Part shown: piece after piece, positions 14,140 through 39,049 of the stretch
Position numbering within the stretch: the first letter of the stretch is position 1
How the letters are laid out: each line of letters begins with the position of its first letter
Virus record (IMG/VR): IMGVR_UViG_3300028800_000001
Span: 248,001 to 312,000 of that record
Reading direction: 5' to 3' (one strand)
Length of the DNA: 64,000 bases
Made by a program: the position numbers and the translations under genes
The notes under the pieces: model-generated
What the model saw: only the letters and a program-made list of their open reading frames with translations
Told to the model about the DNA's origin: nothing
Database searches by the model: none

Positions 14140-14205
14140 AAATCCTTCATTGTGCACACAAAATTTAAGAAAGGATTTGCATTTGTGTTTTTCAATGAAG
14201 GATTT
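14140..14205 (-). promoter_or_regulatory. hairpin occluding terL ribosome-binding site
   Basis: 13-bp inverted repeat 14140-14152/14193-14205 covering GAAGGA upstream of ATG 14134. Confidence 0.55.
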
Positions 14206-14224
14206 AAAAGATGGTTCTTCTGCT

Positions 14225-15205
14225 TTAAATCTTGGGGGAACCAGTGTAGGGCTTAATGCTTGGATTGTTGCCAATATGCATCTTGCTCACTTCACTAAAG
14301 AAGTCTTGCACTGTTGTCGTCTTTGCGAGCCCTCGCTTTTTGAAGGTACTGACGCTGTTACTCAATTGATCAAAACGCTTTGAGATCGTGGCAAGGTCTT
14401 GCTTGGAGGTATAAGGCTCTGCTGCTTTGATTGCCTCTTTACTTTTCTCCACGATTTTTTTGATCGCATCAAGACCAGCATGTGTAATCGGCTCATCCTT
14501 TTTCTTCTTCAGGAGAAAGTTGTTGTCTGGCATCTTTGTGTCATCAATGGGATTTTTTGCATTGGGGCCATGATGAATATTCGTGTGTGAGACGGTGCCA
14601 TCTTGTTCCACCCGAATATTATTGCCATCTTTGCGGTCGCCCAGGCCGGTGACGTATTGCACTGCAAGGTTGCGCAGAGCATCATCCCCACTCATTTTAT
14701 CCACGCCTTTCACCCCTTCTTCTGACCCAGGCATGTGTGCACCAGTTGTATTGATGCCGTCTTCCACCAGATAGCTTGTTCCTTTGTCGTCTTTGGCAAC
14801 AGCAGCAGGGTGGATAATATCAGAGGCTCCAATAGCTTTTGCCATAGAGCTTGCACGCATTGCATTATTCTCTACTTCTTGTGCGGTGTAATTCTCTGTC
14901 TTGGTGCGCAGCGGCTCAATTTGGGTTGCACGATACTTTGTGCCATTAGAAGCGGTCATTGCAAACTGATGTGGATTGGCACGTAACTCTACACCACCGC
15001 CAAAGGAGACGACATCTCCAGCGGAAGTTTTTAGTGGAGCAAAGGTTGCCCCTTTGCCAAAGCTTTCAGGGAGTTTGCCACCCGCACCCGTTGAGGTGCC
15101 AGAAATAAATTGCCCATTGGCCGTGGAGTGATTCGTATTTCCTTTATAGTCTAAGACGGTTTCACGTAACTGCTGCATTGCTGCAACAAATTGATACTCT
15201 TCCAC
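14225..15205 (-). CDS. tagged effector with degenerate HipA/PI3K-like kinase domain
   Basis: N-terminal KGNTNHSTANGQF tag; MAKAIGASDIIHP, QYVTGLGDRKDGN, but no DxG motif; GAGGAG SD. Confidence 0.55.
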   Translation of the reverse strand: MEEYQFVAAMQQLRETVLDYKGNTNHSTANGQFISGTSTGAGGKLPESFGKGATFAPLKTSAGDVVSFGGGVELRANPHQFAMTASNGTKYRATQIEPLRTKTENYTAQEVENNAMRASSMAKAIGASDIIHPAAVAKDDKGTSYLVEDGINTTGAHMPGSEEGVKGVDKMSGDDALRNLAVQYVTGLGDRKDGNNIRVEQDGTVSHTNIHHGPNAKNPIDDTKMPDNNFLLKKKKDEPITHAGLDAIKKIVEKSKEAIKAAEPYTSKQDLATISKRFDQLSNSVSTFKKRGLAKTTTVQDFFSEVSKMHIGNNPSIKPYTGSPKI

Positions 15206-15281
15206 TGGGACTCCTCGCGCAAAAAAATCCTTCAGTCGTTGTATTTTTGTTGACTGAAGGATTTGGGAGTGCGTCTCTATT

Positions 15282-15515
15282 CTACCCTATGTGGCGACTT
15301 TCGCGCAACCATTTTTCTAGTGCATTTTGATTGCCTTGATATGCTTTCCAGGCATCTCTGGCACACAGAGAAATTAAGGGCATTGCTGGATAGAGTGTTT
15401 TCGTCTGCCGATCAAGCACCCGACCGCACGGAAGGTTTTGCCAACGTGGATGATTCTTCTCTTCATCATCCACCAGATACACATTTTCGTTTCTGAGATA
15501 TCCTATAATTTTCAT
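15282..15515 (-). CDS. small paralogous protein (putative immunity family) copy 1
   Basis: GRVLDRQTKTLYP...LISLCARDAWKAYQG...LEKWL. Confidence 0.65.
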   Translation of the reverse strand: MKIIGYLRNENVYLVDDEEKNHPRWQNLPCGRVLDRQTKTLYPAMPLISLCARDAWKAYQGNQNALEKWLRESRHIG

Positions 15516-15535
15516 ATTTCTTTCTTCTTTCTTTT

Positions 15536-16324
15536 TTAACAATTGTGGAAGCGATACGGGATCGAAGCCGCATCTAGCTTATCAGTGATTGCTTTGGTTG
15601 CATACTTACGCTCCATGAAGACCACTTCTTCAATGTGCTTCACGCGTAACCCCTTGTGATACTGCACCTCTGGATAGGAACGCACCTGCTGCACACTGGT
15701 ATAGGAGAGGACGGTGTTGAGGTAACTGGTATCCACTGCTCGGTGATCAGGCGCGGCTACTGGCATTGCCACCAGTTCCATATAGCCACCAAGAGATGCC
15801 TTTCCCAGGCTGTCATCAAACGTAAAGGTCGCTTTACGAGCCACTACATCACGCTTGAACTTTACGGCGATTTGGCCGTACATGCCAACGCTATCACGGC
15901 TTCCTCCCAGCTCACCGTCTGGACTATTGGTCATATATCCGTAGACCGGACGTTTGGTTGGCTCCATATCTTCTGGATAGGAGAACATTGCCAGCTCAAA
16001 CCTTGCGCGTCCGTCAGGATGATACGAGCCACAAGAGTTCCCTGTTTCAAACTGTGATTTGAAGCGTCCTTCCTCAAGAATCTTTTCGAAGGCCGTAGAA
16101 CGAACACGCATCCAAAGACCACTTTCGTCTACCAGCTTTTTGACGTGGGCGTCTACCAGCTTTAAAAAAGCTTCAGCCGTGATGCCACGATAATTTGCAT
16201 GATATTTGACGGTATTCTCAGCATCCTTGTCATAGACGGCCAACATCTTGTCAGAAGGGCGAACATCTTTCAGACGATTGGATGCACCAGGAAAGCGTTT
16301 TGTCGTTGCAACAGCGGTACCCAT
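15536..16324 (-). CDS. DUF3626-like domain protein (putative ADP-ribosyltransferase), no KYN tag
   Basis: WMRVR, GRFKSQFETG, RPVYGY, YGQIAVKFK, TFTFDDSL, YPEVQYHKGL. Confidence 0.7.
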   Translation of the reverse strand: MGTAVATTKRFPGASNRLKDVRPSDKMLAVYDKDAENTVKYHANYRGITAEAFLKLVDAHVKKLVDESGLWMRVRSTAFEKILEEGRFKSQFETGNSCGSYHPDGRARFELAMFSYPEDMEPTKRPVYGYMTNSPDGELGGSRDSVGMYGQIAVKFKRDVVARKATFTFDDSLGKASLGGYMELVAMPVAAPDHRAVDTSYLNTVLSYTSVQQVRSYPEVQYHKGLRVKHIEEVVFMERKYATKAITDKLDAASIPYRFHNC

Positions 16325-16337
16325 AATAATCTCCTTG

Positions 16338-16413
16338 AATTAATTATTTTTTTATTTTCCCGCGTAAATCTCTTTACAAAATTAATTATATGCCACTAGT
16401 ATGTAAAAGACAA
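16338..16413 (-). promoter_or_regulatory. sigma70 promoter overlapped by paired AATTAATT motif
   Basis: TTGTCT(16413-16408)-17-TATAAT(16390-16385); AATTAATT at 16338 and 16380. Confidence 0.75.
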
Positions 16414-16456
16414 GCTTTTCTTCTATGAATATTCAGAAATACAGAAAAGTGGTACT

Positions 16457-17398
16457 TTACGCATGTGGGTTTTTTGCACGATAGGGAATGCCCAATGCTT
16501 TCAGCTTTTTTACGACTGCGGGTTTGATGTCAGAGCCGTTCTCAAAGACGACTTCAGCAATGTGAGACGTGTTGACGCCACCATGATATTGTGCTTCAGG
16601 GTACGTAGGAACTTCAGCAAGACTGGCATACTTGAGAGGGCTGTCATATTTGAGTGCTGCGAAGCCTGTATGATCTGGCTTTGAGAGTGCAGAAGGCAGC
16701 AAATAGCCAGCAGAAGAGAGTGAATCGTTGCCTGTCCAGGTTGTGTTGTCTTTTATACTCTCTTTTAAGCGTACGGAGACAGAGCCGTACATATCAACGG
16801 TGTCACCCCAACCGGCCTTTGTGGGATCAGCACTTTTGAGGCGTCCATCGCCGTCAGCCGAGAGATAGCCGTATATCGGACGATCTTCATCTTCAGTTTT
16901 CATTTGGTCGTAGCCAAAAAGGTCTTCTTCCACACTAGCGCGATGCCAAACATCCAATAATCCGCCAGATTTACCGGTTTCATGTTGTGATTTGAAGCGA
17001 CCATCTGTCAACACCTTGCCGAGTATTTGTGGACGCACTCGTATCCAGGGCTGTGCATCCTTAAAGAGATCAACTGCTTTTTGATCAAGCGCTTTGGTGT
17101 AGTCTTCAACGCTCATGCCAGCTTTGGCTGCTTTAAATGCAAAGACCGTGGCCTTATTGTTGTTATACTTATCAATGATTGCTTGTGGTGGTTTGAGCTT
17201 TTGTAAAATCTTAGGCACAAGGTTATTGGGATGCAGTGGATTCTTCGGTCCTGGCGTTCTGGTGCCATCGCGTGCCACAATCAGGTGCGCTTCTCCTGCG
17301 GTAGAAAAGCGTCCAAGATGATCATGATGTGGGTTGTACTTCTCTTGAAGTTGCAGCACAAGACGTTTAATCAGCCGAATGTCTTTTTGAAAATACAT
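16457..17398 (-). CDS. KYN-tagged DUF3626-like protein
   Basis: EKYNPHHDHLGRFST; WIRVRP, GRFKSQHETG, RPIYGYL, YPEAQYHGGV. Confidence 0.7.
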   Translation of the reverse strand: MYFQKDIRLIKRLVLQLQEKYNPHHDHLGRFSTAGEAHLIVARDGTRTPGPKNPLHPNNLVPKILQKLKPPQAIIDKYNNNKATVFAFKAAKAGMSVEDYTKALDQKAVDLFKDAQPWIRVRPQILGKVLTDGRFKSQHETGKSGGLLDVWHRASVEEDLFGYDQMKTEDEDRPIYGYLSADGDGRLKSADPTKAGWGDTVDMYGSVSVRLKESIKDNTTWTGNDSLSSAGYLLPSALSKPDHTGFAALKYDSPLKYASLAEVPTYPEAQYHGGVNTSHIAEVVFENGSDIKPAVVKKLKALGIPYRAKNPHA

Positions 17399-17466
17399 AC
17401 AAATCTCCAGGCAGAAAAAAGTGTGGTTGCTTTTTATTTTGTGTGAAGATTTGTATGAACGAAGTT

Positions 17467-17715: not shown

Positions 17716-17731
17716 TGGGGGTTTCTCCTTA

Positions 17732-18178: not shown

Positions 18179-18191
18179 CGCTTCCTACTTC

Positions 18192-20663: not shown

Positions 20664-20664
20664 A

Positions 20665-21117: not shown

Positions 21118-21191
21118 TGTTTTCTCCAGTACAAATCATTGCAACAGAAATGCTATTTTTGTTTGTACTGAAGAATTTAGGAGAAATACAG

Positions 21192-22109
21192 TTATTTTTG
21201 TTCGTGGCCTTGCAGGGCAAATGCAGTGCGATCTTCCCCAATGCAGAGCCAGAGATTTTCAAACAAGAGTGCTTCGGCAGGAACACTCATTGTTGGAAAA
21301 GCAGCATCTTTGTCAATATACGCTAAAGTGCAGTGTGGTGTAAAGCCATGTGTGTTGTCAATAGGAACAGGCAGAGACGTTCGAAGCTGTTCACGCCACT
21401 CTGCTATCCCTGGAAGGTCTACAGAGGCGTAAAACGGCAGCGTAGCGCTCTCTGTGGGGGTGTTTGTGAAGCACCCGATCCCTGAGACAATGCCATGTAC
21501 CGGAACCGCGTTTGTCGCATAGTCACCGATTGCTTTTTTGAGCTGTGCGGAAAGGGCATCAGGAACATTCTCAGCGCTTCCTAGTATCATCAAAGTGACA
21601 TGCAGCTCTTGTGGCTCACATTTCCCTTCACAGTCCAGTGCTATTTTTTGTGCGGCATCTGGCTCCAGATAAAATGCCACCATGATTGGCAAGGCCGACA
21701 CAGGTTTAGGTTGCTCTGGTGTTTCTTCTTTGCGTAGCCACAGCGTCTTTAAAAAAGAAACATGCTCTTCGTTGGCGCGAAAGATTGGCGTCTGCAAAAA
21801 GTCTTTGACAGCTATATCGTGTGCTGCAAGATAGCCAATTAATTGTTCTTCATTCTTGACAGGCAACGTCCATGTCGTCTCTTCAAAGATGCTTTTCTTC
21901 TTTGCAGGTTCTTCATCTGAAAGGGTTGCGCGCTCCTCTTCTGGGAGATCATCAAGATTTTCACAAGGCAGCACACGATTCAAAAAATCTTCACGTGCTT
22001 CATCAGTCAATTGGTGCCGTTGCAAAAACTTGGCAACGCGGCGTGAGAGATCAGGTGACATATTGTCAGGTACACTGCTTTTTGCACTATCGTCTTTGAG
22101 TATTTTCAC
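21192..22109 (-). CDS. 2H phosphoesterase (Acb1/2'-5' RNA ligase-like) with N-terminal helical modules
   Basis: Two HxT motifs: ELHVTL and FTPHCTLAY. Confidence 0.8.
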   Translation of the reverse strand: MKILKDDSAKSSVPDNMSPDLSRRVAKFLQRHQLTDEAREDFLNRVLPCENLDDLPEEERATLSDEEPAKKKSIFEETTWTLPVKNEEQLIGYLAAHDIAVKDFLQTPIFRANEEHVSFLKTLWLRKEETPEQPKPVSALPIMVAFYLEPDAAQKIALDCEGKCEPQELHVTLMILGSAENVPDALSAQLKKAIGDYATNAVPVHGIVSGIGCFTNTPTESATLPFYASVDLPGIAEWREQLRTSLPVPIDNTHGFTPHCTLAYIDKDAAFPTMSVPAEALLFENLWLCIGEDRTAFALQGHEQK

Positions 22110-25100
22110 AAAGTGTCTCCATTCAAAATGGTTTTGCCTACACGGGTTGCTGTTCTATTTAAAACTACCAGAAAGTCAGCACGTTTATTGATCGAATCTA
22201 CATGAGAGCGATCAACATAAATGGCATCATAGCCCTTCATTGCGGCGTAGCGACCAGGATCGTTGGCAAGATCAAAGAGCCGATCAATGCGGCGTGACTC
22301 CGTATACTTCCCAGCATCATCCAAGGCTTTGCCCCGTGTACGCAAATCATTCTTGTAGTCAATCCACTCATTGATTAAACGTCCCTTCTCAATTGCGGTG
22401 GTATTTTTGAGTACGGACATATGCAGCACATCATCGCCATAAGTAGCGGCCACATGAGACGCACTATATCGGTCAGATACTCCTTCTGTGGTAAGCGCGG
22501 TATAGGTTCCGTTGCCATAGACGCCAAGTCCTGCAAAATAGTGCCCACTTTGATAGCTTGCAGCATAGCCCAGGCCGTCAGAGGGATCACCACCATCATC
22601 CACACCGCGATAGAGCTCAGCCTCACCGTCTTTAATGTGCTGCGCAAGCACATTATCTTCAACCACATGTGGAGGGCCATCAAACCCCTGTGCTTTATAG
22701 ATTTCCTGTAAGCAGGCGTCGGCATCCGTGGCGCTACTGCTTCCTGGGATTGGGCCTTTGCCTGTATCCATATAGTTTTTGACGTAGGGAATATCTTCAG
22801 GGTTGCTATATTTGGCTTCCGTCTTCTGAAATTCCTGGTTATCAGGGTGTTTCGGTCCTTTCTCGCGGGTACCATCAGCATGCACAAGCAGGTGTGCATT
22901 TTCTGTCGTGGTAAATTTCCCTACGTGATCATGCGCAGGGTTGTACTTTTCTTCAAACTGCTCAACACTTTTTGTTCCTGAGACGCGGTAAGAAATGCCT
23001 TTGGCTTTGAGTTGTGCCTCAAGCGGTGGTGTAAGCTCATAATCATTATGAAACACAATTTCTGCAATAGTTGAGGTGTTTAGACCACCATGAAATTGTG
23101 CCTCTGGATAGCCGCGTACATCACTCACGTTTTGGTAGGTCAGTGGATCTGGACCATGCACACTAAAATTGGTATGATCAGGATGCAGCATGCTTCCTGG
23201 CAAGAGATAGCCACCCATACCAAGTGAGTCATCACCTGTCCAGGTGGTTTTTTGCTTCACCTCTGGTTTGAAGCGAACCGCAACGCCTCCATATTCATCA
23301 ACAGAGTCGAACATGCCATGCCGCGTCTGTCTCAGGCTTGCGCCGTCAGGATGATCGCTTAGATAGCCGTAAAGTGGACGCTGCTCTTTGGCAAGATCGT
23401 CTGGATAGCCAAAGAGATCATGTTCTGCTTCAGAACGTGAATCGTGATCCATAATTCCCGCAGAGGTATTGGTTTCAAATTGCGACTTGAAGCGTTCATC
23501 ATCCAATATCTTTGAAAGAATTGTTGGGCGTACCCGCATCCAAGGTTCTGCATTCTTGAGCAGTTCCACGGCTTTGTCATCAACGGCTTTGTTGTACTCT
23601 TCAGCCGTCATGTTATGCGTCTGCGCATGCTTTTCAGCGAACGCTGCACCTTGTATGTCATATTTTTTGAGGACGGCGTCTGGTGGACGCACCTGTTCTA
23701 AGATATCTTTTTTCTGATTATCAGGATGCGCCGGTCCTTTTTCAGTGGTACCATCACGATGCACTAAAAGGTGGGCATTTTCGGTGGTCGTAAATTGTCC
23801 ATTGTGCCCGTGGGCTGGATTATATTTCGCTTCGCCTGTGAGCAGCTCTTGATCACGTGCGGATAAATCTTCTAGCGATTGCACACCCATCAAACGATTG
23901 AAAAAGTCCTGACGCTCTGCGAGTGTCCAAGAGGCCGCAACAGGGCCAGCAAGAAACTTTTCTACCAGTGGTACTAGATCAGGGGCAAGCGTATCAGGGA
24001 TTGTGTTAATGGCTTGATTTTCTGCATCAGTGATTTGATCTTTATGTTCTGGGGTATCATCATCTATTTCCTCGTCATTTTGCTTCTCCTCTGGTAAATA
24101 CAATGAAAGATCAAGTGGTTCATGCATCTTGCCGTGGCTGCGATGCCCTGGCTTTTTGCGCGGCACAGGGATAACGCCATGAGCAGGTTTGCCGTGAGGA
24201 GCCGCATGTGGTTTTGCAGCAGGTGCGCCGTGAGCAGCAGCAGGTTTCTTGAGTGGCTTCACGCTCGTTGGCACTGCTGGATGCTTTGGTGGCATTCCAC
24301 CGGTTTGTGACTCAGGGTGTGCCGTAATCTTGAAAAAGTCTTCCCAGGTGGGATTCTTCATTCCAGCTAGCTGATGCAAAATCTCAAAACGTTTTGCGAA
24401 ACCTAACGCTGCTTCATCATTGGCTGCATACTCTTTTGAGAGGATCAGGGCTTTGGTTTCTTTGGTGAGAAACTTTCCCAGGATGCCATGATCAATGCTG
24501 TTGCGCAGAAAACTTTTTCCAATGACTTTCATCAGAAAGCTATGCGACTGGATTGCAATATCTTTTTTGACGAGTGCCGAAGAAAGTTGTGTCAGGTTAA
24601 TCTTGCCGGTCTTTTGATTGAGGGTATAGTGTCCAGATTGATCTTGTTTCATGCCAAGAATATATTCCAACATGCCGACTTTGGTCACCTGATCAGGGGG
24701 CATTTTCTCCATTGCCTCGGTTGCCGTCTTATCATCCAGGGGAGTGCTTTTTACATCCTCAGAGACCACTACGGGCTCTTTGTCCACTGTTCCACTGTGG
24801 ACTACAGGCACCGTATCAGAGGCTCCTACCAGATCTGCAATGCGGCTTGCACCGGTCTGTGAAAAGGCAATGCGCGTGCTACCAGTGGGCACAATACGAT
24901 ACGTCTTGCCATTAATGTTGGCGGTATAGACGCCGTCAGCCCCTCTGGTCATTGCCCCTTTGTCGGAGAGGGCTTTCGCAATGTGGGCAGGCATGGTGGT
25001 GAGCACATCAGCGTGCACACCGCCTGCGCCATCATCAGCACCGATGAATTGTCCGGTCGTAGTGCTGTGATTACGGTTATATTTTTCTTCAGGAAGATAG

Positions 25101-25788: not shown

Positions 25789-25905
25789 ACTTGTCTCCCC
25801 AAGAGATAGTTTTCTTTTTCGTATTTGGTATTTCTCTTTGAGAAGATTTGGAGATTTGATGGGGGATTAATTTTTGAGGTTGTTTCTTTTTCTAAGTATT
25901 TTTTA

Positions 25906-27469: not shown

Positions 27470-27482
27470 TTTCTTTTCTCCT

Positions 27483-28301: not shown

Positions 28302-28302
28302 A

Positions 28303-28515: not shown

Positions 28516-28517
28516 GG

Positions 28518-29465: not shown

Positions 29466-29477
29466 CAGAGCTCCTTG

Positions 29478-29753: not shown

Positions 29754-29861
29754 GTAAAGCGCTCCTTTCGAAAGAAAAGCACAAAGTAGTGTTTGGAGGA
29801 TTTTGTATTGGTGAAGAATTTGGAAGGATGTGTCTAGTATACCGCAGCGCGTGACAAAAGG

Positions 29862-30305
29862 CTATACTTTGTTGAGGGCTGTTGTGACTGCAATAGAAAC
29901 GCCAGCCGCCGCGCCAATAATAAGAAACGTTTGACCATAGGCTTTGAGGATTCCAAGGCTACTCACACGTGCTTGCGCAATGAGCACTCCAAGTGCACAG
30001 GTGATGAGCGCACATAAGAGCAACGCAAGTGGTTTGGGCGCAAAAGCAAAAGGTAACGAAGGGAGCAGTATGCCAATACAAGAAGCAACACCGATCACCA
30101 GGGCATACTTGACGGTGTTCACATTCGTCACATCAGAGAGATATGCCCCGCCTGTCATCGAAATACCAGAGGCCAGGGCCAATCCAACGGCTGAGAGTAC
30201 TAATGCATGTGTATCACCGATGATGTATCCGGCTGCAATCACGCCAAGAATGCAGGTCATCCCATCAAAACTACCAAAGATGGCCTTACTGACGATTTCC
30301 TTCAT
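29862..30305 (-). CDS. VIT1/CCC1-family membrane protein
   Basis: IFGSFDGMTCILGVIAAG, ASGISMTGGAYLS; 5 TM segments. Confidence 0.75.
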   Translation of the reverse strand: MKEIVSKAIFGSFDGMTCILGVIAAGYIIGDTHALVLSAVGLALASGISMTGGAYLSDVTNVNTVKYALVIGVASCIGILLPSLPFAFAPKPLALLLCALITCALGVLIAQARVSSLGILKAYGQTFLIIGAAAGVSIAVTTALNKV

Positions 30306-30681
30306 AATGCTGCTCCTTTAAGAGTTCTAGGATTTGGAGTTGTTGATGATTGATCTTCAGTAAAAGTGCATTTGTCTCATACATCTTTTCAACCTCTGCG
30401 GCTTCAATGGTGTCACGGGCACGATCTTTTCCAGCCTGTCTATTTTGACTCATGAGAATGAGCGGCGAGCTAAACGCTGCTTCTGCTGACATAAAGAGAT
30501 TGCACAGAGTAAAGGGGTAACTGTCCCAATGATAGAACCAACCAACACTGTTGAGTAAAAACCAGAGAAAGAGCAACGCTGCCTGAATCAAGATAAAGTT
30601 CCAATTACCTAACGCTTTGACCGCACCATCAGCCAGCCGATCACCCGCGTCATGCGGAAGATGTATATTCATACGCTTCAC
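30286..30681 (-). CDS. DUF1003 membrane protein
   Basis: GDRLAD...GNWNFI, WDSYPFTLCNLFMSAEAAFSSPLILMSQNRQ. Confidence 0.85.
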   Translation of the reverse strand: MKRMNIHLPHDAGDRLADGAVKALGNWNFILIQAALLFLWFLLNSVGWFYHWDSYPFTLCNLFMSAEAAFSSPLILMSQNRQAGKDRARDTIEAAEVEKMYETNALLLKINHQQLQILELLKEQHYEGNRQ

Positions 30682-31055
30682 GCATCTGCTCCAAATTCTG
30701 AGAGTGCTAACTTTGCTTCGTGTTCCTCCACCATGCGTTCAAGTTCTGCGGTCTCAATGCCATGTTCACGTAACATCTCAACCGCATACGTGACCAGAAA
30801 GAAGGCACTATCTAACAGCTTTTTGAGTTGCTCAAGATCATTGTCCATCAAGCGTTCCTCTCTTGACATGAATCCGAACTTTTGTGCATGTTCTGTTCCA
30901 TCTTCTCCACGCAACCAGGAAAGAAGAAGTCCAGAAAAATCCTTGACTTCTCCCAGCCCGTAGGGTGGATCAGTGACACACAAATCGATAGAGTTTGTCT
31001 GAAGGTGACGTAAGACTTCTAAGCAATCGCCATGAATGACCGTATCAAGCATCAT
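30678..31055 (-). pseudogene. truncated N6/N4 DNA methyltransferase N-terminus fused to an unrelated short ORF
   Basis: IHGDCLEVL...SIDLCVTDPPYG present, but no SAM-binding DPFxGxG motif; only 125 aa. Confidence 0.6.
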
Positions 31056-31921
31056 TTTGTCCTTCTGGTCTTTTTGGTGGGATCAAACCTTTCTCCGGTT
31101 AACTGGCGTTGCATGCGTTCTTCTTCGCGTTCTAAGCGAAAGCGCTGAATACGTTCTATCTCATCACGTGGTGGCAAACATTTCCACATCTGCTGCATAC
31201 TGTAGTACACAATAGAATAGCGAAACGAATCCTGTTCCAACTGTGTAATGGGCGTCACACCATGCAAAATGTTTTGGCCGTCAAACATGAGCAGCGAATT
31301 ATTACGCAGTTCAAAGCCCAGGCCGTATTCAGGCACCGCAAGATAGCCACCAAGCACGTTGCGTTTAAGCACAATCATGTTTGACCACACATCACGAAAG
31401 TTGCCTGCATCAAAGTGATAAGGGAGAGGATTATTTTTGTTCACGATGCCAGAGGTGAAGACGGATTCGTCAATCTTCCAATTTTCTAGCACTTTTTCGG
31501 TCATCTCCATGTGTTGTTGATAGAGCAGCGGCGCAAATTCTTGGTAGTAGTGCGCAACTTTGGCCGCATAACTCACAATGATGTCATGCTCATCAGGATG
31601 TTCTACATAACAACTCGTGGCAGTGCAGTAATCACGACGCAGCGTGTTGCGTGGCAAAAAGCCAACGGTGCGTGATTGAGCCATCATGCCACCTGTGCGT
31701 ATCTCCAGCTTGTAGTCAATCGTTTGCAGTGCTTTGATCAGCGCGCTGTTATCTTCTTGTAAGAGGAGATAGACAATCTTTGGCTCAGCATTCCCTGGCT
31801 CATAGATCACTGTTGGTTCGCTGATCAGCGTGTCATAGTCTTCGTCTTGCGCATGACGCAATTTGTACTGCGAAAGATCAAGTTGCTTTTTTGTTGCAAT
31901 CCTAGTGTAAAGATCTGCCAT
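31052..31921 (-). CDS. TET/JBP-family 2OG-Fe(II) dioxygenase, copy 1
   Basis: FTSGIVNKNNPLPYHFDAGN (HxD), GGYLAVPEY, LHGVTPI, RYSIVYY. Confidence 0.85.
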   Translation of the reverse strand: MADLYTRIATKKQLDLSQYKLRHAQDEDYDTLISEPTVIYEPGNAEPKIVYLLLQEDNSALIKALQTIDYKLEIRTGGMMAQSRTVGFLPRNTLRRDYCTATSCYVEHPDEHDIIVSYAAKVAHYYQEFAPLLYQQHMEMTEKVLENWKIDESVFTSGIVNKNNPLPYHFDAGNFRDVWSNMIVLKRNVLGGYLAVPEYGLGFELRNNSLLMFDGQNILHGVTPITQLEQDSFRYSIVYYSMQQMWKCLPPRDEIERIQRFRLEREEERMQRQLTGERFDPTKKTRRTK

Positions 31922-32735
31922 ACGCACCTTCCCTGTACGGGTTTTCCATCCCCAAATCAATGCCCTGCTCTTCTAAGTAGCGCGCCAAAAAGAATGCGAG
32001 CACATCTGGATTTGCTTTGATCTCTTCACGGGCGCGTACTTCGCGCAGGCCACTCACCATCCAGGCAAATTCGGAAGGGGAACAAATGAGCACAATTTGC
32101 CGAATAAGCCCATTTTCAAATTGCTCACGATTTTTGCTTGGAACACCTCGATAGACCGGTGGTGGAATATCTTCAACGACCCGTGGCAAATAGGGGGCCA
32201 GTGGTGCTTCTTCACCATCATCCTCGTCTTCTTGCTCTTCTGAAATCACAGAGAGATAGGAAGGTGTCACAGCAGGACGTACCATTTCAGGCAGCGCTTC
32301 AACAGTTTTTGGAATACTTGCGAGCAAGGTTTGCAACTCTTGTTCTGAAGAGCCCAGTGCATTCAGATCAAAACCGGCTTCATTTTGTTCACGAAGTAAT
32401 TGCAAAAACATCGTTTGGTCTACGTTTTGCTCATTATGAAGTCGGTTATCGGCCACTAGATAGGCTTCCACTTCACGCGGTGACCAGTTCTTCGGCAAAA
32501 TGTCGGCACGTAACTCATCCCACTGGAGATAGAGTGCCGCCTCGACCACACCATGACCGGCAACCAGCAAATAGCGCTCATCGTCTTGCTCCTGGCACAC
32601 AATAGAGCGTACCTGTCCGAAGCGCTTGAGACTGGCTGCAAGGCGCACAATATCCGCATTGGTATGGATTTTATAGTTTTTAGGATGTGCTCGCACTGCG
32701 GCAAGCGGAACAATCTTATTCGTTTTGAAGTGCAT
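31902..32735 (-). CDS. ParB N-terminal (ParBc/Srx) domain protein
   Basis: HPKNYKIH, SLKRFGQVRSIV, LVAGHG, LVADNRL. Confidence 0.85.
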   Translation of the reverse strand: MHFKTNKIVPLAAVRAHPKNYKIHTNADIVRLAASLKRFGQVRSIVCQEQDDERYLLVAGHGVVEAALYLQWDELRADILPKNWSPREVEAYLVADNRLHNEQNVDQTMFLQLLREQNEAGFDLNALGSSEQELQTLLASIPKTVEALPEMVRPAVTPSYLSVISEEQEDEDDGEEAPLAPYLPRVVEDIPPPVYRGVPSKNREQFENGLIRQIVLICSPSEFAWMVSGLREVRAREEIKANPDVLAFFLARYLEEQGIDLGMENPYREGAYGRSLH

Positions 32736-32758
32736 CTTCTCTTCCTCGGTGCGCAGTG

Positions 32759-32808
32759 AATTAATTATTTTTTCACGCTCTTCTCTTTTTTATTTTTTAA
32801 AAATAATT
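32759..32808. promoter_or_regulatory. paired AATTAATT motif (one mismatch)
   Basis: AATTAATT at 32759 and AAATAATT at 32801. Confidence 0.5.
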
Positions 32809-32810
32809 AT

Positions 32811-33008
32811 TTATTTCTTTTCGCATTTACACTGTTGGAAGAAGGGGAAGCGCAACTCAGACTGCGAAACAAAGCTATGAAATACCAGTGCCCCGCCACA
32901 GCGTGTACAGATCAGGGCACACCAACCATGTGCAACATAGAAGAGCCGATCCCCTTGATGATAAATTCTGACTTCGCTATGCTTTTCGGTCAGTTCTCGC
33001 ATACTCAT
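32811..33008 (-). CDS. small Cys-containing hypothetical protein
   Basis: ATGA overlap with upstream ParB; CTRC and CKC. Confidence 0.45.
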   Translation of the reverse strand: MSMRELTEKHSEVRIYHQGDRLFYVAHGWCALICTRCGGALVFHSFVSQSELRFPFFQQCKCEKK

Positions 33009-33601
33009 CCTAGCCTCGTGATATCCACCAATGATAAGAGGACACGAAAACGCTCTGTGTCATCGGGCGCAACAATATGGCGCATGAGCCGTTCATAGCG
33101 TTCTTTTATTTCTGGTGTAACACGCAAACGAATATACACTTCTTCTTTGGTTTCAAAAAAGATTTCCTGCTGTTCTAGCTTTGGCATACGGCTATTTTGT
33201 AACAGCTTTTGTAGCTCACCATCATCGTAGCCTACAGAGAAGAGGTCAAACCCTTGCTGCTCTTGCAAGAGGTCAAGGAGCGCTACTTCATCATCTTCTG
33301 CCAGTTGGCTCAGGCGATTATCTGCTACCATGATTGCATTGATTTCAGTCGGTGCAAGATCTGGTGGCAAAATATCGATGTGTACCTCCTGTGCCCCTTC
33401 AGCACGCATTGCCTCCACCATTCCGTGTCCAGCTACAATAAGGTAGGTATTGGGCGCGCCTTGCTGCACAACAATACTACGGAATTGTCCAAAACGCCGG
33501 TAACTGGCTTGTAAGTGTTTCATCTGTTTGGCTGGATGATGGCGATAATTGCCAGGGTGCGGATGTAGTTGCGTGAGGGCAACCCGTTTATTGGTGATCA
33601 T
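33005..33601 (-). CDS. ParB N-terminal domain protein with RHH-like C-terminus
   Basis: HPGNYRHH, SYRRFGQFRSIV, IVAGHG, MVADNRL; start moved to ATG 33601. Confidence 0.8.
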   Translation of the reverse strand: MITNKRVALTQLHPHPGNYRHHPAKQMKHLQASYRRFGQFRSIVVQQGAPNTYLIVAGHGMVEAMRAEGAQEVHIDILPPDLAPTEINAIMVADNRLSQLAEDDEVALLDLLQEQQGFDLFSVGYDDGELQKLLQNSRMPKLEQQEIFFETKEEVYIRLRVTPEIKERYERLMRHIVAPDDTERFRVLLSLVDITRLG

Positions 33602-34436
33602 GTTGCACCTTCTCAATGGTACTTTGTAATCGTTTTTCCTCACGCTCGGTACGCTTCTGGCGAATGCGTTGCATTTCTTGCCCAAGAGGCAAACATTTCC
33701 ACATACTTTGCAGTGAATAGTACACAATAGAGTAGCGATAGCCATCAGGGCGCGTTTGTGCAATAGGGGTTACCCCATGCAACAGGTTTTGTCCATCGAA
33801 CATGACCAGTGAATTATTTTTAACAGCAATGCCAAAGTTATATTCAGGAACCGACAAAAGACCACCACTGGTTCCTGCGCGAAAGACCAGCATATTTGAC
33901 CAGACGTGTTTGAAGTTTCCTGCATCAAAGTGATACGCCAGTGGGTTGTTTTTATTAATAATGCCAGAAGTAAAGACAGAGCGCTCAAGTGTCCAGTCTG
34001 GCAACACTTTTTCCACCTGCTGTTCGTGGTAACTATAGAGCTCTGGATTGTAGCGCTCGTAATAGGTTGCAACACGCTTTGCGTAGGACGTAATCAGGGC
34101 ATGCGCCTGCGCACTATCGCGAGCCAGAGAAGAAACGGTACAAAAATCATCACGAATGGTGATGCGTGGACGAAAACCAAAGATACGACTTCGCGTCTTC
34201 ATTCCACTGGTGCGCTCTTGCTCACGATACTCAATGCGCTTCAGGCAGTCAGTGATTGCACGACAATCATCATCGAGCTCTAGGTAGACAATAGAGACGC
34301 GTCCACTTTCTGCGTCGCGCACCACTGTAGACGTTTCAATGCGTTCTGCAAAGTCGGCTTCTGTGGCACTACGGAAGCGATAGGATTGCAAATCAATGAC
34401 ACCGCGTGTGCGTGTCATCACCTGTGGCTCTTGCAT
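33588..34436 (-). CDS. TET/JBP-family 2OG-Fe(II) dioxygenase, copy 2
   Basis: FTSGIINKNNPLAYHFDAGN, GGLLSVPEY, LHGVTPI, RYSIVYY. Confidence 0.85.
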   Translation of the reverse strand: MQEPQVMTRTRGVIDLQSYRFRSATEADFAERIETSTVVRDAESGRVSIVYLELDDDCRAITDCLKRIEYREQERTSGMKTRSRIFGFRPRITIRDDFCTVSSLARDSAQAHALITSYAKRVATYYERYNPELYSYHEQQVEKVLPDWTLERSVFTSGIINKNNPLAYHFDAGNFKHVWSNMLVFRAGTSGGLLSVPEYNFGIAVKNNSLVMFDGQNLLHGVTPIAQTRPDGYRYSIVYYSLQSMWKCLPLGQEMQRIRQKRTEREEKRLQSTIEKVQHDHQ

Positions 34437-35290
34437 TACGCCTCCACTGGCATTGGCTCAAGGGCATGTTCTTTGGCATAGAGCCGTAAGAACTCAGTAA
34501 AGACATCCGTATTGGTATCCAGTTGCCATTTTGCCCTGGCCTGTGAAAGGACATTCATCACCCAAATATATTCCTCTTGTGAATAAATCAGCACAATCTG
34601 GCGAATAGTTGTGGTGTTATAGGTATGTAAGAAGTCTTGTGGAGTGGTGCCAATAATTTGTTCGGGGGCCGCAAAGACGGTGGTTCCTTTTTCGTCAGAA
34701 GTGGCAACGGTTCCTGGTGCATACACAGGGCTATAAGGTGCTGGCGTAAAAAGTGGATTATGCGGGGCTGGAGGACCATCATCCTCTTCCTCAATATATT
34801 CTTGATTGACACGCATGGACTCACGAATAGCGCTTTGCGCTTCTTCTTGTCCACCAAAGGCCATTTCCTCTAGCATACGTGCCATATCTTGCTCAGAAGT
34901 TCCTAGCGACAAAAGGTCAGCACCAATGGTAGCTTGCTCACGGAGTAGCGCGAGTAACTTCTCTTGATCATCGTGGCCTGCGTCGCTGAGCTTATTGTCA
35001 GCAACCAGATAGCCAGAGACCATGCTGTCGTCCCAGGACGCAGGCAAGAGATCCGCACGTAGCTCTTGATAACCTAAACGGCGTGCCGCTTCGAAGACGC
35101 CATGACCAGCGACCAGCAAATAGGTACCATCAGGCTGTTCTTGACACACGATACTTCTGCCTTGTCCAAAGCGGGTGAGGCTAGAAGCAATATTGCGTAG
35201 TTGTGTTTCGGTATGGACACGATAATTCTTGGGATTTGGACGCACCGCAGAGAGGGCAATGCGATGGTTTTCTTTCAGCATTTCTATCAT
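34436..35290 (-). CDS. ParB N-terminal domain protein
   Basis: NPKNYRVH, SLTRFGQGRSIV, LVAGHG, LVADNKL; C-terminal IRQIVLI shared with 31902-32735. Confidence 0.85.
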   Translation of the reverse strand: MIEMLKENHRIALSAVRPNPKNYRVHTETQLRNIASSLTRFGQGRSIVCQEQPDGTYLLVAGHGVFEAARRLGYQELRADLLPASWDDSMVSGYLVADNKLSDAGHDDQEKLLALLREQATIGADLLSLGTSEQDMARMLEEMAFGGQEEAQSAIRESMRVNQEYIEEEDDGPPAPHNPLFTPAPYSPVYAPGTVATSDEKGTTVFAAPEQIIGTTPQDFLHTYNTTTIRQIVLIYSQEEYIWVMNVLSQARAKWQLDTNTDVFTEFLRLYAKEHALEPMPVEA

Positions 35291-35391
35291 AAAAACTCCT
35301 CAAAATGACAAAGCCAGAGATAAGTGGATGTTTTTCTCTACTGAAAATTTGAGGAATTTTGTATAGGAGGATTGCTGCTAGTATAGCATAC

Positions 35392-35952
35392 CTAAGAAAT
35401 AAACAAAAGAGAAAGAAGTGTTTCTACATTGCGCCGCAACTGTGTTGGAGTATCATTACGCAGGTGATAGCTTGGAATGGTGTGCTGATAGGCGAGAAAG
35501 ACGTTGTTGATTTGGGTCTGGATACCTTTCACCCAACTCTCACTCTGGTTCCCTCTGGCCTTTCTCCGCAGCAATGCGGCCTCGCTACACAGTTCCACGA
35601 GCGTCACTTTCCCAGGAAAATTGGTTGAGAATAATTCAATACAAGAGCGCGTAAAGATGCGGCTTCCTTCAGCCAGCAACGTGTACTCTTCGAAAAAAGG
35701 ATGCTGTAGCTTCTCGCACAGCGCTGGAATATCGCACAGCAGCGCGGTCGAGAGACGATCTGTCCCTGCAAAGACTTCGTTCTCTGCGTAGAGCCCAAGA
35801 AGAAGTACACGCGTCGAGGGATAGAGCTGCCCACGAACTGTACCACAACGAAACTGTGTACTGGCACAGGGGCCAAGGGCCGGAAGCAAACTGCGCACTG
35901 TGGTGGTTTTGCCAACTCCAGGCGCGCCGCCAAGAAAAACAAACGCTTTCAC
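35392..35952 (-). CDS. P-loop kinase, probable 5-hydroxymethyluracil DNA kinase
   Basis: GGAPGVGKTT, FAGTDRLS, EGSRI, RKARGNQSESWVKG; GTG start 35952 with GGAG SD. Confidence 0.75.
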   Translation of the reverse strand: MKAFVFLGGAPGVGKTTTVRSLLPALGPCASTQFRCGTVRGQLYPSTRVLLLGLYAENEVFAGTDRLSTALLCDIPALCEKLQHPFFEEYTLLAEGSRIFTRSCIELFSTNFPGKVTLVELCSEAALLRRKARGNQSESWVKGIQTQINNVFLAYQHTIPSYHLRNDTPTQLRRNVETLLSLLFIS

Positions 35953-36276
35953 AAAAAACTCCAAGAAGAAGATAGATGTTTGGTGTTTTTTGTGAAGATG
36001 AATATTTTTTTCTCTAACCCCTCTATAGGACCAGTCTTATACAAGAGTAATAACAATCTAAGAAGATATATTACTTCTCTCAGTCTTACTCATATACCAG
36101 TCTTTAGAAGAGTAAGTAAGTATAGTAATAACTATATATCTTCTATAGTATATAGTCTTTCTTTTTTTTCGGCGCTCTATAAGCTATATTCTCCAAAAAT
36201 CAGGACTTTATAAGAAAATCGAGACCAATTTTCACCAGTTTTGGGCGCATTTTCAAAACTCTCAGGAAAGTCGCAT

Positions 36277-36708
36277 CTAGTCCTCCCAACGTAATTTCCA
36301 AACGTTCATACGACTTTTCTTTCCTTGTACCGTGGCCGAAAGGACAAAGCCCTGCGCACGATAGAATTTGTTGGCGTCAATGGTTTCAATCGCTTTGAGA
36401 CTCACACAATGTTTTCCTGCCTGATGCGCGGCAAGAACGGTACGTGCTACCAGCATGTTTCCAATACCTTTGCGACGAGTATTTTGATCGACACAAAGAT
36501 AGGAAAGCGTGGTTTGTTCGTCACGACGATGGTGAAAGAGCACAAAGCCCACCAGTTTTTCTTCTTCCCAGGCCGTAATAAGACTTTCATGCTTTATTGC
36601 TTCAAAGTATTGTGGGTAGAGAATAAAGCCAAGCTCTTTTTTACTGGCAGAAGCAAGACGCGCAAGCAAAGGAACGTCTTCGTCACACGCGGGGCGTAGC
36701 GCAATCAT
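36277..36708 (-). CDS. GNAT acetyltransferase
   Basis: LCVDQNTRRKGIGNML, ANKFYRAQGF. Confidence 0.85.
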   Translation of the reverse strand: MIALRPACDEDVPLLARLASASKKELGFILYPQYFEAIKHESLITAWEEEKLVGFVLFHHRRDEQTTLSYLCVDQNTRRKGIGNMLVARTVLAAHQAGKHCVSLKAIETIDANKFYRAQGFVLSATVQGKKSRMNVWKLRWED

Positions 36709-37583
36709 ATGAGACTCCTCAATTGACTACAGAGCAGCGGTGCCATGCGTACTCCAGAGCCACCCATCGCAGGAGCATAATAGATGTCATCTTGTTTGTA
36801 GAGTTGTTTTTTGAGTGCCATTGCTGGCCTCCATCCTTCTATCAGGGGTTGCTCTTCTTCCGCAACCAGGACAAGATCACCGGTAAGCCGCGCAAAAAGT
36901 TCTTTCCAAAGCGCATACTTTGGCTCCATGCTGTAGCCTTTCAGTTTCTTTTGCGAGAGGGTAGAACTGCCTGCATAGTGATAGGGGGTATTCGGCACAA
37001 GATTGGCATAGGCAAACTGAAAACGATTCTCTCGTAAATAAAAGGTTGGCCGCGCTGGTGAGGCAATAAGCACTTCTTCAGAGACCAATAACTTTACTTT
37101 GCGTGACCAGCCCCATACATAGTGATCGGCAATGCGAAAGCCATGTGAAATGATCTGTTGTGCGCCAGTAGGCACATCGTCAGTGCGCCGTTCGGCAAAA
37201 AAGAGCCGACTTTGCTCAACAAAGCGCTGAACATTGAAGTGATAACTTGGATACGCACCAAGATAGAGAGGTCCGATATGGGTGAGAATATCATATTTGG
37301 CTCCATGTGGCGGATGTTTACTGGAAAACCAGAATGCGCCATTTTCACTCAGGCGTCCCAGGTGTGCCGTCCAGGGTGCGCCTCGCTGGTGCCACTTTGA
37401 CCAGCCATGGTAGGCTCGCATCTCTTCTGGCTCTCCGCTTGGATAGATGAGCCCTGTACTGGCTTTCCAGGCAACATGTTCCGCATCGATATCGTTCCAG
37501 GTAAATGCTTTTTTTGCGGCGAAGAGTTCCCAGGCAAAAAAGGCACCAAGAACGCCCATGCCATGTAAATGATAGTGTGTCAT
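36705..37583 (-). CDS. FAD-dependent oxidoreductase/lyase-like protein
   Basis: LHGMGVLG Rossmann motif, AWKASTGL, EGWRP, GGSGVRMAP. Confidence 0.7.
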   Translation of the reverse strand: MTHYHLHGMGVLGAFFAWELFAAKKAFTWNDIDAEHVAWKASTGLIYPSGEPEEMRAYHGWSKWHQRGAPWTAHLGRLSENGAFWFSSKHPPHGAKYDILTHIGPLYLGAYPSYHFNVQRFVEQSRLFFAERRTDDVPTGAQQIISHGFRIADHYVWGWSRKVKLLVSEEVLIASPARPTFYLRENRFQFAYANLVPNTPYHYAGSSTLSQKKLKGYSMEPKYALWKELFARLTGDLVLVAEEEQPLIEGWRPAMALKKQLYKQDDIYYAPAMGGSGVRMAPLLCSQLRSLI

Positions 37584-38485
37584 CGAAGAAGTAAGACTCC
37601 TGTCTTTTTATAGAGTGTTTTGCGCACGCGGTCTGGCCCATTCCAGCCATGCACTTCTCCCAGGTAGGCATCAGGGAACAACTCAGCGCGTAAACTAAAA
37701 AGTTCTTTAGCTTCTAGTGGAGAAAGCGTGTAAAGTTGCGCAAGCATTTGATCAATATCATGACCGATATAATAGCGTCCTTCATAGACGGCGTGAAAGT
37801 CACAGAGCATTGTTTCCAATTGTGCAATATGCAGCACGATATCATGTTTGTGTACACGGCGTAACAAATCTTCTCCTTGCTCGTCAAGTATGCGTACTGC
37901 CTGTGGGGTGTTACCAACAACGGTGGGATAAAAGAGAGCAAGTCCTTGTCGTGGGCCACTAGAAAACTCATTGCCCATATTGGGTGCAACGAGCGGATAG
38001 TGATGCACACTCATGAGTATTTCACAGGTCTTATATGCAGCCCAGCGGCCATTGCCCCAAAAGCGTTGCAGGCGATCTGTGAGCGTTTGCCAGTTTGCAT
38101 AGGGATCGCTACGGGACAATCCTTCTTGAAAAAAGGCCGTGAGACTTTCATAGGGGCGCGTGATTTCCTGCACAGAGAGCAGGTGCTTGCTGATAGTGCC
38201 GCCACGAAAGCCACGCCGTTCGGTCGCACAGGAGAGCCGCGCAAACTGCGCAGGCAGCGCACTGCGCACAGGAGTGTGAGGGTAGACGCGTGTTACAGAA
38301 CCAAGATGATAATAGCTGACGTAGAGTAGCGTATGCCAGAGCGCTTCTTCAGGAGTGAAGTGGCTGTAGAGTCGTTCAAGAAGTGGGTACACCGGATCAA
38401 CATCTTTGGTAAGCAACTGGGCATGACAAAAGGAAAGGAAATCTTGAAAAAGTTTATCTTCTGAAAAGAACATTGGATATTTCAC
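37580..38485 (-). CDS. amino acid:DNA transferase (aGPT-Pplase2 clade, HhH-glycosylase-like)
   Basis: DVDPVY, TERRGFRG, GNGRWAAYK, SSGPRQGL, LETMLCDF, YYIGHDID. Confidence 0.8.
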   Translation of the reverse strand: MKYPMFFSEDKLFQDFLSFCHAQLLTKDVDPVYPLLERLYSHFTPEEALWHTLLYVSYYHLGSVTRVYPHTPVRSALPAQFARLSCATERRGFRGGTISKHLLSVQEITRPYESLTAFFQEGLSRSDPYANWQTLTDRLQRFWGNGRWAAYKTCEILMSVHHYPLVAPNMGNEFSSGPRQGLALFYPTVVGNTPQAVRILDEQGEDLLRRVHKHDIVLHIAQLETMLCDFHAVYEGRYYIGHDIDQMLAQLYTLSPLEAKELFSLRAELFPDAYLGEVHGWNGPDRVRKTLYKKTGVLLLR

Positions 38486-38577
38486 TTTCTAGCAGCGCGG
38501 AGAAGAGCGTAGCAGGGTTTGCCCACCATCGCCTGAGTATTTCACGCTTTGAAGAGGACAAACCCTGAAAACGCTTC

Positions 38578-38943
38578 TTATTGTGAAGGAAGCTGTACCG
38601 CAGGAGGATTGCCTGGAACACTAGGGATCACTCCTGTTGTGCCACTAGGCAGTGTTCCCTTGCCACCCACATCTTTCCAGAAACGTTGCTCGGCTGTTTC
38701 TACAACGGGCTCTGCGGCAATGATAACTGGAGTTGCGTCAGGGACATTGACTCGCAGGTAATGCAGCGCGCCATTGATAAAGGAGAAAACAGCAAGCGTT
38801 GCGCCTTGCGTGACAATCAGTTTGATATCGTTGCTGTTTGGGGCAAGCAGGAGTGTTCCAATGGCCTCCAAGAAAACGATAGCAGCGCTGATAGCAAGCT
38901 GTAAAAATGTGTGGATGAGTGCGGCCTTTTGAGCAGAAGACAT
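38578..38943 (-). CDS. holin-like two-TM membrane protein
   Basis: KAALIHTFLQ followed by two TM helices; start uncertain (38943-38961). Confidence 0.45.
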   Translation of the reverse strand: MSSAQKAALIHTFLQLAISAAIVFLEAIGTLLLAPNSNDIKLIVTQGATLAVFSFINGALHYLRVNVPDATPVIIAAEPVVETAEQRFWKDVGGKGTLPSGTTGVIPSVPGNPPAVQLPSQ

Positions 38944-39049
38944 ATGCATCCCTTTCTTCATACAAATGAAAAAGTATCATGTTTTTTCTATGAAGATTTA
39001 GGATATGTTCCTCAGTATACCGGACTTCAAGAAGAGGTGCAAGAGTGGG

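Follow-up and report, generated by a model that had tools for sequence, protein, structure and literature searches.

RNA gates predicted to sequester Shine-Dalgarno sequences at the heads of expression units in an uncultured jumbo phage

What does a hairpin over a ribosome binding site do when it recurs in front of gene after gene? The question is raised by a stretch of 64,000 nucleotides (hereafter, the window), which comprises bases 248001-312000 of the IMG/VR virus record IMGVR_UViG_3300028800_000001, a genome of 327,295 bp with direct terminal repeats. Before many of its minus-strand genes, among them the large terminase gene terL, an inverted repeat pairs an upstream arm with the Shine-Dalgarno sequence (SD). 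An earlier note on this DNA proposed that such hairpins silence read-through messages of late genes, and that a late promoter starting inside each hairpin yields RNA with a free SD, as in phage T4. Given the analysis presented here, it is a well supported prediction that RNA gates sequester the SD of genes that head expression units, and the release of the flagged gates is probably not through an internal promoter of the T4 kind.

The genome has no near DNA match in INPHARED, and its TerL is at most 41% identical to that of any cultured phage there. A run search found the phage DNA in 13 rhizosphere metagenome runs, and the four rhizosphere runs that were compared hold near-identical strains with zero variants in any hairpin. 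Our own crude gene calling yielded 564 genes genome-wide, of which at least the portal start was called wrongly. Feature positions are those of the window unless the genome is named.

Hairpins over the Shine-Dalgarno sequence

The hairpins and leaders in question are the following, with the upstream (5') arm given first where two arms are listed.

14193-14205 / 14140-14152, minus strand: terL hairpin (gene start 14134), 13 bp plus an inner 7-bp helix; within 14140..14205, 5' arm AAATCCTTCATTG against SD arm CAATGAAGGATTT, then a T-run
15252-15264 / 15225-15237, minus strand: 13-bp stem with the same AAATCCTTCA arm, T7 after the stem
17444-17457 / 17396-17409, minus strand: hairpin of gene 17398 (DUF3626-like protein), 14 bp, SD and AUG buried
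21162-21175 / 21122-21135, minus strand: hairpin of gene 21117, SD buried; the gene opens a tight five-gene cluster
25794..25847, minus strand: weak hairpin of the small terminase gene (start 25788), arm with CCAAATCTTCTCA
29811..29841, minus strand: leader of gene 29753, with the CCAAATTCTTCAC motif at 29811-29823 lacking a strong partner; TATACT -10 hexamer at 29836-29841, 14 nt 5' of AAAT, promoter score at the 97.5th percentile
35348-35360 / 35292-35304, minus strand: hairpin of ParB-like gene 35290, then T5 and ATG; TATACT at 35380-35385
35980-35996 / 35948-35964, minus strand: hairpin of the kinase gene (start 35952), SD and GTG start covered
38955..39042, minus strand: leader of gene 38943, TTGCAC-17-TATACT (39014-39042), then CTAAATCTTCATA; arm of 8 bp, 38989-38996 against 38955-38962, beside the SD

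Fold stability was assessed by comparing the minimum free energy of the mRNA strand against 200 dinucleotide shuffles. This yielded -22.2 kcal/mol (z -5.4) for the terL hairpin, -19.7 kcal/mol (z -6.8) for the 15225 stem, -19.5 kcal/mol (z -5.1) for the 17398 hairpin, -19.6 kcal/mol (z -4.4) for the 21117 hairpin, -19.6 kcal/mol (z -3.5) for the ParB hairpin, and -15.9 kcal/mol (z -4.8) for the kinase hairpin. The arms of these structures, with z-scores of -3.5 to -6.8, lie exactly where the earlier note had put them, and the two cases it had called weaker are indeed so, with -12.0 kcal/mol (z -2.4) at 25788 and -12.7 kcal/mol (z -2.5) at 38943. Its description of the 15225-15264 stem as a related structure that leaves the SD free agrees with the shared arm and with the position of the SD of gene 15205 outside the stem, which looks like a terminator. 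Helices span 7-25 bp overall and mostly 12-17 bp in the window, with a few of 20-21 bp elsewhere, and loops (arm spacing) span 12-45 nt. No Rfam family matched; a single sub-threshold chance match was obtained in window positions 10000-41000.

The pairing of SD and upstream sequence exceeds chance across the genome. An upstream partner for the SD window is present in 16.8% of the genes preceded by a gap of 50 nt or more, and in 6.2% of those that are tightly packed. For the 220 genes with such a gap, the pairing of a gene's own upstream 68 nt with its SD window was compared with non-cognate pairings, 219 per gene. At p<=0.005 there are 11 genes against 1.1 expected (about a 10-fold excess), and at p<=0.02 there are 18 against 4.4, with terL, 21117 and 17398 among them. 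The cognate p is 0.0045 for both terL and 21117, 0.023 for ParB, and 0.032 for the kinase.

The strand on which the helices are valid was examined through their wobble pairs. The G-U pairs reported previously for three stems were found at 17398, 21117 and ParB. Symmetric scoring of 38 helices gave 24 wobbles that form G-U in the mRNA, against 8 of the A-C type, which would be G-U on the other strand. Since this excess arises although regional composition favours the reverse, it indicates the hairpins act in the message, and the view of them as RNA-level SD occluders on the mRNA strand is supported.

The flagged hairpins belong to a family of about 20 members, assembled partly by eye and here called class B. 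The 5' arm of this family reads (Y)CAAAT-YCTTCA followed by A-rich sequence, and its SD, either GGAGT or GAAGGA, precedes a spacer rich in T. Over all hairpins, the SD lies within the 3' arm in more than 20 cases. That the upstream arms share a motif had been claimed before, and AAAT[CT]{2,4}TCA has 23 intergenic copies against 9.6 expected, with the sense-oriented copies before genes ending 41-61 nt 5' of the start codon. CAAAT is present in 15/20 class B upstream regions against 17/208 others, CTTCA in 11/20 against 11/208, and GGAGT is also strongly over-represented. The SD-to-AUG spacer contains 49% T in class B and 23% in other genes, and a TTTT run lies in this spacer in 4/18 class B genes, of which terL, ParB and the kinase are three, and in 20/464 other genes (p 0.009). 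The arm is apparently constrained beyond the needs of pairing, given that CTTC is retained opposite GGAG via a wobble pair at 17398, 21117 and 171940, that the motif at 29811-29823 is unpaired, and that at the kinase gene the motif pairs with the start codon and not with the SD. The T-richness of the spacers, in turn, looks like something imposed by the AAAT portion of this motif.

Outside the window, class B hairpins precede tail tube, portal, protease/head, tail spike, minor head and peptidase genes, and the SD helix of the tail tube gene has 20 bp and -27 kcal/mol. The minus-strand block of the window holds TerL (start 14134), TerS (25788), an RNA ligase, five DUF3626 paralogues and a thymidine-hypermodification set, and each tight gene cluster in it is headed by a class B cassette or a AATTAATT-type cassette. 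In all, about two dozen genes carry an SD-burying hairpin, most genes for particle building among them, and the hairpins head structural, packaging and DNA-modification units. The earlier designation as late genes is only partly right: the ParB-like, kinase, Tet/JBP and ADDT genes serve DNA hypermodification.

Conservation was examined in four relatives (L082, L083, L087 and L088), reached via TerL homologues 63-81% identical in the protein collection. All four have an SD-covering hairpin before terL, with TerL identities of 81% for L082, 81% for L083, 67% for the AT-rich L087, and 63% for L088, and with z-scores of -8.1 in L082 and -4.8 in L087. The arms are unrelated in sequence, reading TTTCACTCCAATAC... 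in L082, AATCTCTAAATATTC... in L087 and ACCAATCAC in L088. Further SD-burying hairpins precede other genes in the relatives, some being perfect helices of 16-21 bp, and gene 5309 of L083 has the promoter-arm module described below for class B (TTGCAA-18-TAGAAT-AAGGG, then the arm). In L084 (TerL 62%), terL overlaps the upstream gene and has no hairpin, and terL likewise abuts the upstream gene in 80 IMG/VR loci about 40% identical, which therefore could not serve the comparison. The helix at the orthologous terL site is thus seen to covary, and burying the SD is a common habit of the clade as far as these genomes tell.

Several close TerL homologues (P0003, P0013-P0015 and P0023) are interrupted by an intein (PT-HINT / Intein_splicing), with the split terL at 10001-12014 in L083 and 9504-11474 in L087; the TerL of the window has none. 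A plus-strand 16-bp terminator-like hairpin with a T-run (10469-10508) adjoins the downstream end of the minus-strand terL array. The 324-nt spacer 5' of the kinase gene (35965-36276) is rich in repeats, with AAGACTGGT three times, two TATACT hexamers, and several direct and inverted repeats of 11-17 nt; a similar stretch lies 5' of genome gene 81883. For the portal gene, the probable start is an in-frame ATG further upstream, right after a 14-bp SD-burying hairpin (genome 202296-202450, L091).

Two geometries relative to the predicted promoter

The genome contains about 30 early promoters that are nearly identical. An A-rich element lies upstream, CTTGAC or CTTGTC is separated from TATACT by 17 nt, and the leader that follows is conserved and 33-46 nt long. 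Seven promoters of the sigma70 type have a -35 hexamer or spacer that is the specific complement of the SD region of their own gene. These sites, here called class A, are 4951 and 6705 in the window and 60591, 89823, 7230, 86807 and 176437 in the genome; six belong to the early class, and 176437 has the -35 hexamer TTGTTT. Their promoters score at or above the 98.5th percentile. In the early set, 5/28 cognate pairs rank first against non-cognate partners, where 1 is expected. The class A gates in the window, together with a probable third whose helix is weaker (cognate p 0.14), are the following.

4900..4946, plus strand: class A gate of 4951, TTGTCC-17-TATACT; spacer 4905-4918 is a perfect 14-nt complement of SD 4933-4946
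6640..6701, plus strand: class A gate of 6705, TTGTCT-17-TATACT; spacer 6643-6653 against SD 6691-6701, p 0.0045
55649..55715, minus strand: probable class A gate of 55644, TTGTCT-17-TATACT; spacer arm 55697-55706 against SD 55649-55656

Given the class A arm lies 5' of the predicted start, only read-through RNA can bury the SD, and the RNA of the promoter itself would be free. This predicted anatomy shows start-site-dependent gating, which is the logic of T4 and of IS10. The T4 logic that the earlier note proposed across a regulon can be read at the seven class A promoters, which lie at other genes than those it was proposed for.

Before CTTGAC/CTTGTC, the early cassette reads TTCTGAAAATACAGAGAAAAAA, and its leader after TATACT reads ..GAAATAAACGAAAAC..ATTCAAGGAGAAA. 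Cassettes of this kind lie in the window at 4880-4951, 6620-6705, 16385-16440, 39932-40009, 54883-54990, 55644-55760 and 61887-61970, and the AT-rich L087 shares the upstream element. In metagenome assemblies, these repeats are points where contigs break, with loose ends at 16405-16439. A third kind of intergenic cassette is marked by the box AATAATTAATT, found eight times in the window (2623, 16338, 27139, 27181, 32759, 41226, 41229 and 54899) against 0.06 expected. The box is usually paired, with one copy at or after the -10 hexamer and the other just 5' of the SD, as at genes 16324, 27111, 32735 and 54883 and in regions 2565-2647 and 41175-41251; it may be an operator or a 5'-leader helix.

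In class B, a TATACT promoter at the 94th-99th percentile of random windows lies 5' of the arm at 29753, 35290, 38943, 152580, 165559, 171940 and 174321, and likewise at 174536, the tail tube gene and the portal gene, so that 7-10 of the about 20 members have a sigma70-type promoter in this position. The -10 hexamer ends 8-28 nt 5' of the arm, which puts the arm 1-21 nt into the predicted RNA; the arm would therefore be transcribed together with the gene, as a part of its own leader. These promoters lack a consensus -35, have a purine after the hexamer, and are often of the extended -10 type: TGn is present in 10/33 class B-type promoters against 0/30 early ones (p 2e-5), and their leaders have a median of 79 nt, that of the early ones being 37.5 nt. 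These predicted promoters are a class apart from the early ones. The combination of TATACT and YAAAT as -35 and -10 of a single promoter was rejected, as their spacing of 6-26 nt is mostly too short.

Possible release of the gate

In the proposed mechanism, the first gene of each unit has its own RNA helix, in which an anti-SD arm rich in pyrimidines pairs with the SD and in many cases also with the start codon. RNA carrying the 5' arm would be poorly translated and, where a U-run follows the stem, might be partly terminated as well. Class A read-through RNA would fold the hairpin, while the RNA of the strong early promoter would escape it. In class B, the arm would lie in the leader made from a weak -35 / extended -10 TATACT promoter 8-28 nt upstream or, where no promoter is recognised (terL, 17398 and 21117), between cistrons. 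The class B gate would hold middle and late messages off by default, and release would act on the conserved arm. A probability of roughly 0.55 is given to this reading of class B as leader or intercistronic translational gates with release acting on the arm.

As for the means of release, a phage factor that binds the arm or alters RNA polymerase is a tentative proposal that falls short of even odds. A second start at the arm, so far unrecognised, which is the idea of the earlier note, is a doubtful one, and the absence of any release, with the hairpins acting in throttling or insulation only, is unlikely. Release by translational coupling from ribosomes terminating upstream was rejected as a general rule, as the arms start 9 to more than 50 nt past the upstream stop codon.

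Several points weigh against the reading of class B as releasable gates. The 13 runs with the phage are all DNA and none is RNA, and the 5' ends given here are predictions only. The same is true of the promoters, whose matrix was trained on the early promoters of this genome alone, and no promoter of the scanned kind is present at 15205, nor was one of any kind recognised at terL, 17398, 21117, 25788 or the kinase, where the arm may therefore hold a new one. The partial selection of class B by eye makes its word-enrichment p-values optimistic. The free energy of whole hairpins presents no clear difference between sense and antisense (12 against 10 cases). Lastly, the gates on genes needed in bulk (tail tube, portal) are so stable that some means of release is required, for which the searches yielded no candidate protein.

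Searches of the phage genome for homologues of Q, RegB, RNase III and S1 were negative; for Com, PF10122 gives only a 12-bit match in a 30-aa frame, and the phage has no Com homologue. Hence, any release factor would be new. No RNA polymerase was detected, as the multisubunit search was negative and none is among the ten largest proteins; the control of the T7-type search was unresponsive. The single sigma factor of the phage is ECF/SigF-like, with regions 2 and 4 (genome 119205-119783), and such a sigma implies a bipartite promoter. A gp55-type sigma is absent from the genome (phrog_234 and phrog_12791 were not found).

Under the model of the earlier note, a compact late promoter would coincide or overlap with the CAAAT-YCTTCA arm. 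Late RNA would start just past the arm and lack the anti-SD, and silencing would affect early or read-through RNA alone. RBS-sequestering hairpins with an internal late promoter are described for T4 e, soc, 49, I-TevI/II/III and segB and for Aeh1 mobE (PMC3014915, PMC2988022), where RBS denotes the ribosome binding site. The layout of T4 gene e, in which TATAAATA overlaps the 5' arm AAATACCTTC (PMC3014915), matches the present one: the upstream arm pairs with the SD or AUG in a stable helix, a short shared word stands beside the anti-SD (TATAAATA-CCTTC in T4 e, YAAAT-YCTTCA here), and several late genes lie in long co-directional arrays. The model gains from the start-site-dependent gating predicted for class A in this same genome, from the conservation of the arm beyond pairing, from its end lying 41-61 nt 5' of the start codon, and from the phage having its own sigma factor. 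Moreover, helices of -20 to -27 kcal/mol on bulk genes need either arm-less RNA or a factor that removes the arm. There is also a potential source of read-through for terL, as the following early-type promoter would read into it.

16385..16413, minus strand: sigma70-type promoter TTGTCT-17-TATAAT, drives gene 16324

Read-through from this promoter would meet the 15225 stem and the terL hairpin. However, the TATAAATA-type motif is absent from the arms (10 copies are present in 327 kb, on both strands), and the phage lacks the gp55-type sigma of T4. The late promoter said to lie inside the flagged hairpins was not recovered: their arms and loops hold no promoter-like element, dyad searches of the class B upstream regions gave no bipartite motif with a gap beyond the compact arm, although a sigma with regions 2 and 4 would call for one, and a de novo expectation-maximisation run, the kind of motif search that had been suggested, collapsed onto A-rich runs. 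Unlike in T4, about half of the sites have a sigma70-type promoter just 5' of the arm, which would put the arm on the transcript of the gene and make a second promoter redundant. The relatives with 81% TerL identity use another arm word, ACTCCAA, and the set of genes is larger here than in T4 (about 20 plus 7), DNA-modification genes included. A compact late promoter in the arm is accordingly judged a doubtful explanation.

The T4 logic has a counterpart outside phages. Davis, Simons and Kleckner (1985) and Krebs and Reznikoff (1986) reportedly described fold-back inhibition of transposase translation in IS10 and IS50 on transcripts from outside promoters. Class A alone resembles this, with a 5' arm that lies upstream of the gene's own transcription start and pairs with the RBS; here, however, the setting is a phage, at least seven sigma70-type promoters are concerned, the -35 hexamer or spacer serves as the arm, and the flagged class is not of this type. 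The com-mom system of phage Mu, in which a translational activator opens an RBS-sequestering stem-loop, offers a parallel. In both, the late message of the gene itself folds into a stable hairpin over the start signals. A phage factor that binds on the 5' side of the stem opens it in Mu and would have to do so here, activation in the present phage being our inference. Mu com-mom concerns one gene, whereas a set of genes shares an arm word here and Com has no homologue.

The hairpins may also be mainly intrinsic terminators in leaders or intergenic regions that happen to hold the SD, with late expression achieved via antitermination. In phage lambda, a leader terminator is relieved in this manner (pR'-tR'/Q), and Thermus phage P23-45 switches to promoters independent of the -35 element. 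The gp39 protein of P23-45 acts by antitermination through poly(U) terminators (PMC3351154). Similarly, a promoter is here followed within 50-150 nt by a U-run hairpin before late genes (ParB, tail tube and 63993), and two host-type promoter classes exist, with and without a consensus -35. T-runs follow the stems at terL, 15225, ParB, the kinase and 190853, and also in L087, and the excess of TTTT in the class B spacers is in line with this explanation. In the leaders of the tail tube gene and of gene 63993, the promoter precedes a strong terminator, the order at the tail tube gene being TTGACG-17-TAGTAT, the terminator, and the 20-bp SD helix.

Yet most stems have no U-run, the stems are AU-rich with loops of 14-43 nt, and a consensus terminator scan flags none of the hairpins, which as a set do not combine the G+C-rich stem, the loop of 3-8 nt and the directly following U-run of intrinsic terminators. 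A terminator does not require an SD, which the 3' arm nevertheless holds so often, and antitermination would not free it, as read-through RNA keeps the SD buried. Given no Q homologue was found in the phage genome either, we consider it improbable that the hairpins are mainly terminators. Regarding the tail tube leader (genome 153065-153371, L089), about 30 nt separate the promoter from a terminator hairpin with A-tract and T-tract, and the promoter-to-terminator piece would yield a short transcript of about 75 nt that recalls the 6S RNA of lambda.

The stems might instead be RNase III-type processing sites, where cleavage frees the SD or stabilises the flanking messages, as precedented by the T7 R sites and the lambda N leader. 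Long near-perfect intergenic helices do exist, those of L082, L087 and the tail tube leader reaching 20-21 bp, and stems lie between the cistrons of long co-directional arrays. RNase III, however, prefers roughly two helical turns, most helices of the window have 12-17 bp within an overall range of 7 to 25 bp, and the phage has no RNase III gene; we consider this explanation very improbable. That the inverted repeats act in DNA (as dimer operators or cruciforms), or arise by chance from T/C-rich and purine-rich composition, is hardly credible: antisense folds are overall about as stable as sense folds and the genome has true palindromic boxes (e.g., AATAATTAATT and TAGTATACTA), but the shuffle z-scores and the cognate test exclude chance, the wobble bias is for the mRNA strand, one arm is always the SD or start codon, and the arms vary in spacing by 12-45 nt and covary between phages.

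Among the ways in which the class B gates could open, we thus return to release acting on the arm. The CAAAT-YCTTCA arm may be the site of a new phage factor, be it a protein that binds the RNA and strips the arm from the SD or a new kind of compact late-promoter recognition, a proposal that is less likely than not.

Gene neighbourhood and meaning of the proposed gates

The DNA (thymidine) hypermodification cluster occupies 30286-38485 on the minus strand of the window, and a set of this kind also adjoins terL in the relatives L084 and L088. Its members are the following.

31052-31960 and 33588-34436, minus strand: two Tet/JBP oxygenases
31902-32735 and 34436-35290, minus strand: two ParB-like genes
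35392-35952, minus strand: P-loop nucleotide kinase
36277-36708, minus strand: GNAT gene
37580-38485, minus strand: ADDT amino-acid:DNA transferase

The five DUF3626 / phrog_8314 paralogues lie in one block, at 15536-16324, 16457-17398, 22106-25165, 27483-28463 and 28518-29465. The matching neighbourhood in L083 and L087 has several ADP-ribosyltransferase (ART / ADPrib_exo_Tox) genes. Elsewhere in the genome, at about 206000-214000, the intergenic T-arm-like words GGTTCGATTCC and GAGTTCGAATCTC suggest a possible tRNA gene cluster.

Hiding the RBS in a hairpin is an old device of phages, documented so far at a few T4 genes and in insertion sequences; here it is predicted for about 27 genes of a 327-kb phage and for its relatives. 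Two geometries appear tied to two host-type promoter classes: one would insulate early units from read-through, and under the other, messages for tail tube, portal, protease, terminase and the enzymes of DNA hypermodification would be subject to a conserved gate. If the hairpins only throttle, they are an ordinary though unusually systematic feature. If the arm is indeed the site of a new phage factor, this factor would turn on translation of about 20 messages together, from morphogenesis and packaging to DNA modification, and this clade of uncultured jumbo phages would have a regulon-wide switch at the level of translation or of the start site. With a dedicated factor or a promoter of a new type to open it, the gate would be a simple and portable timing switch, and would also provide a handle for recognising temporal gene classes in uncultured huge phages from sequence alone.

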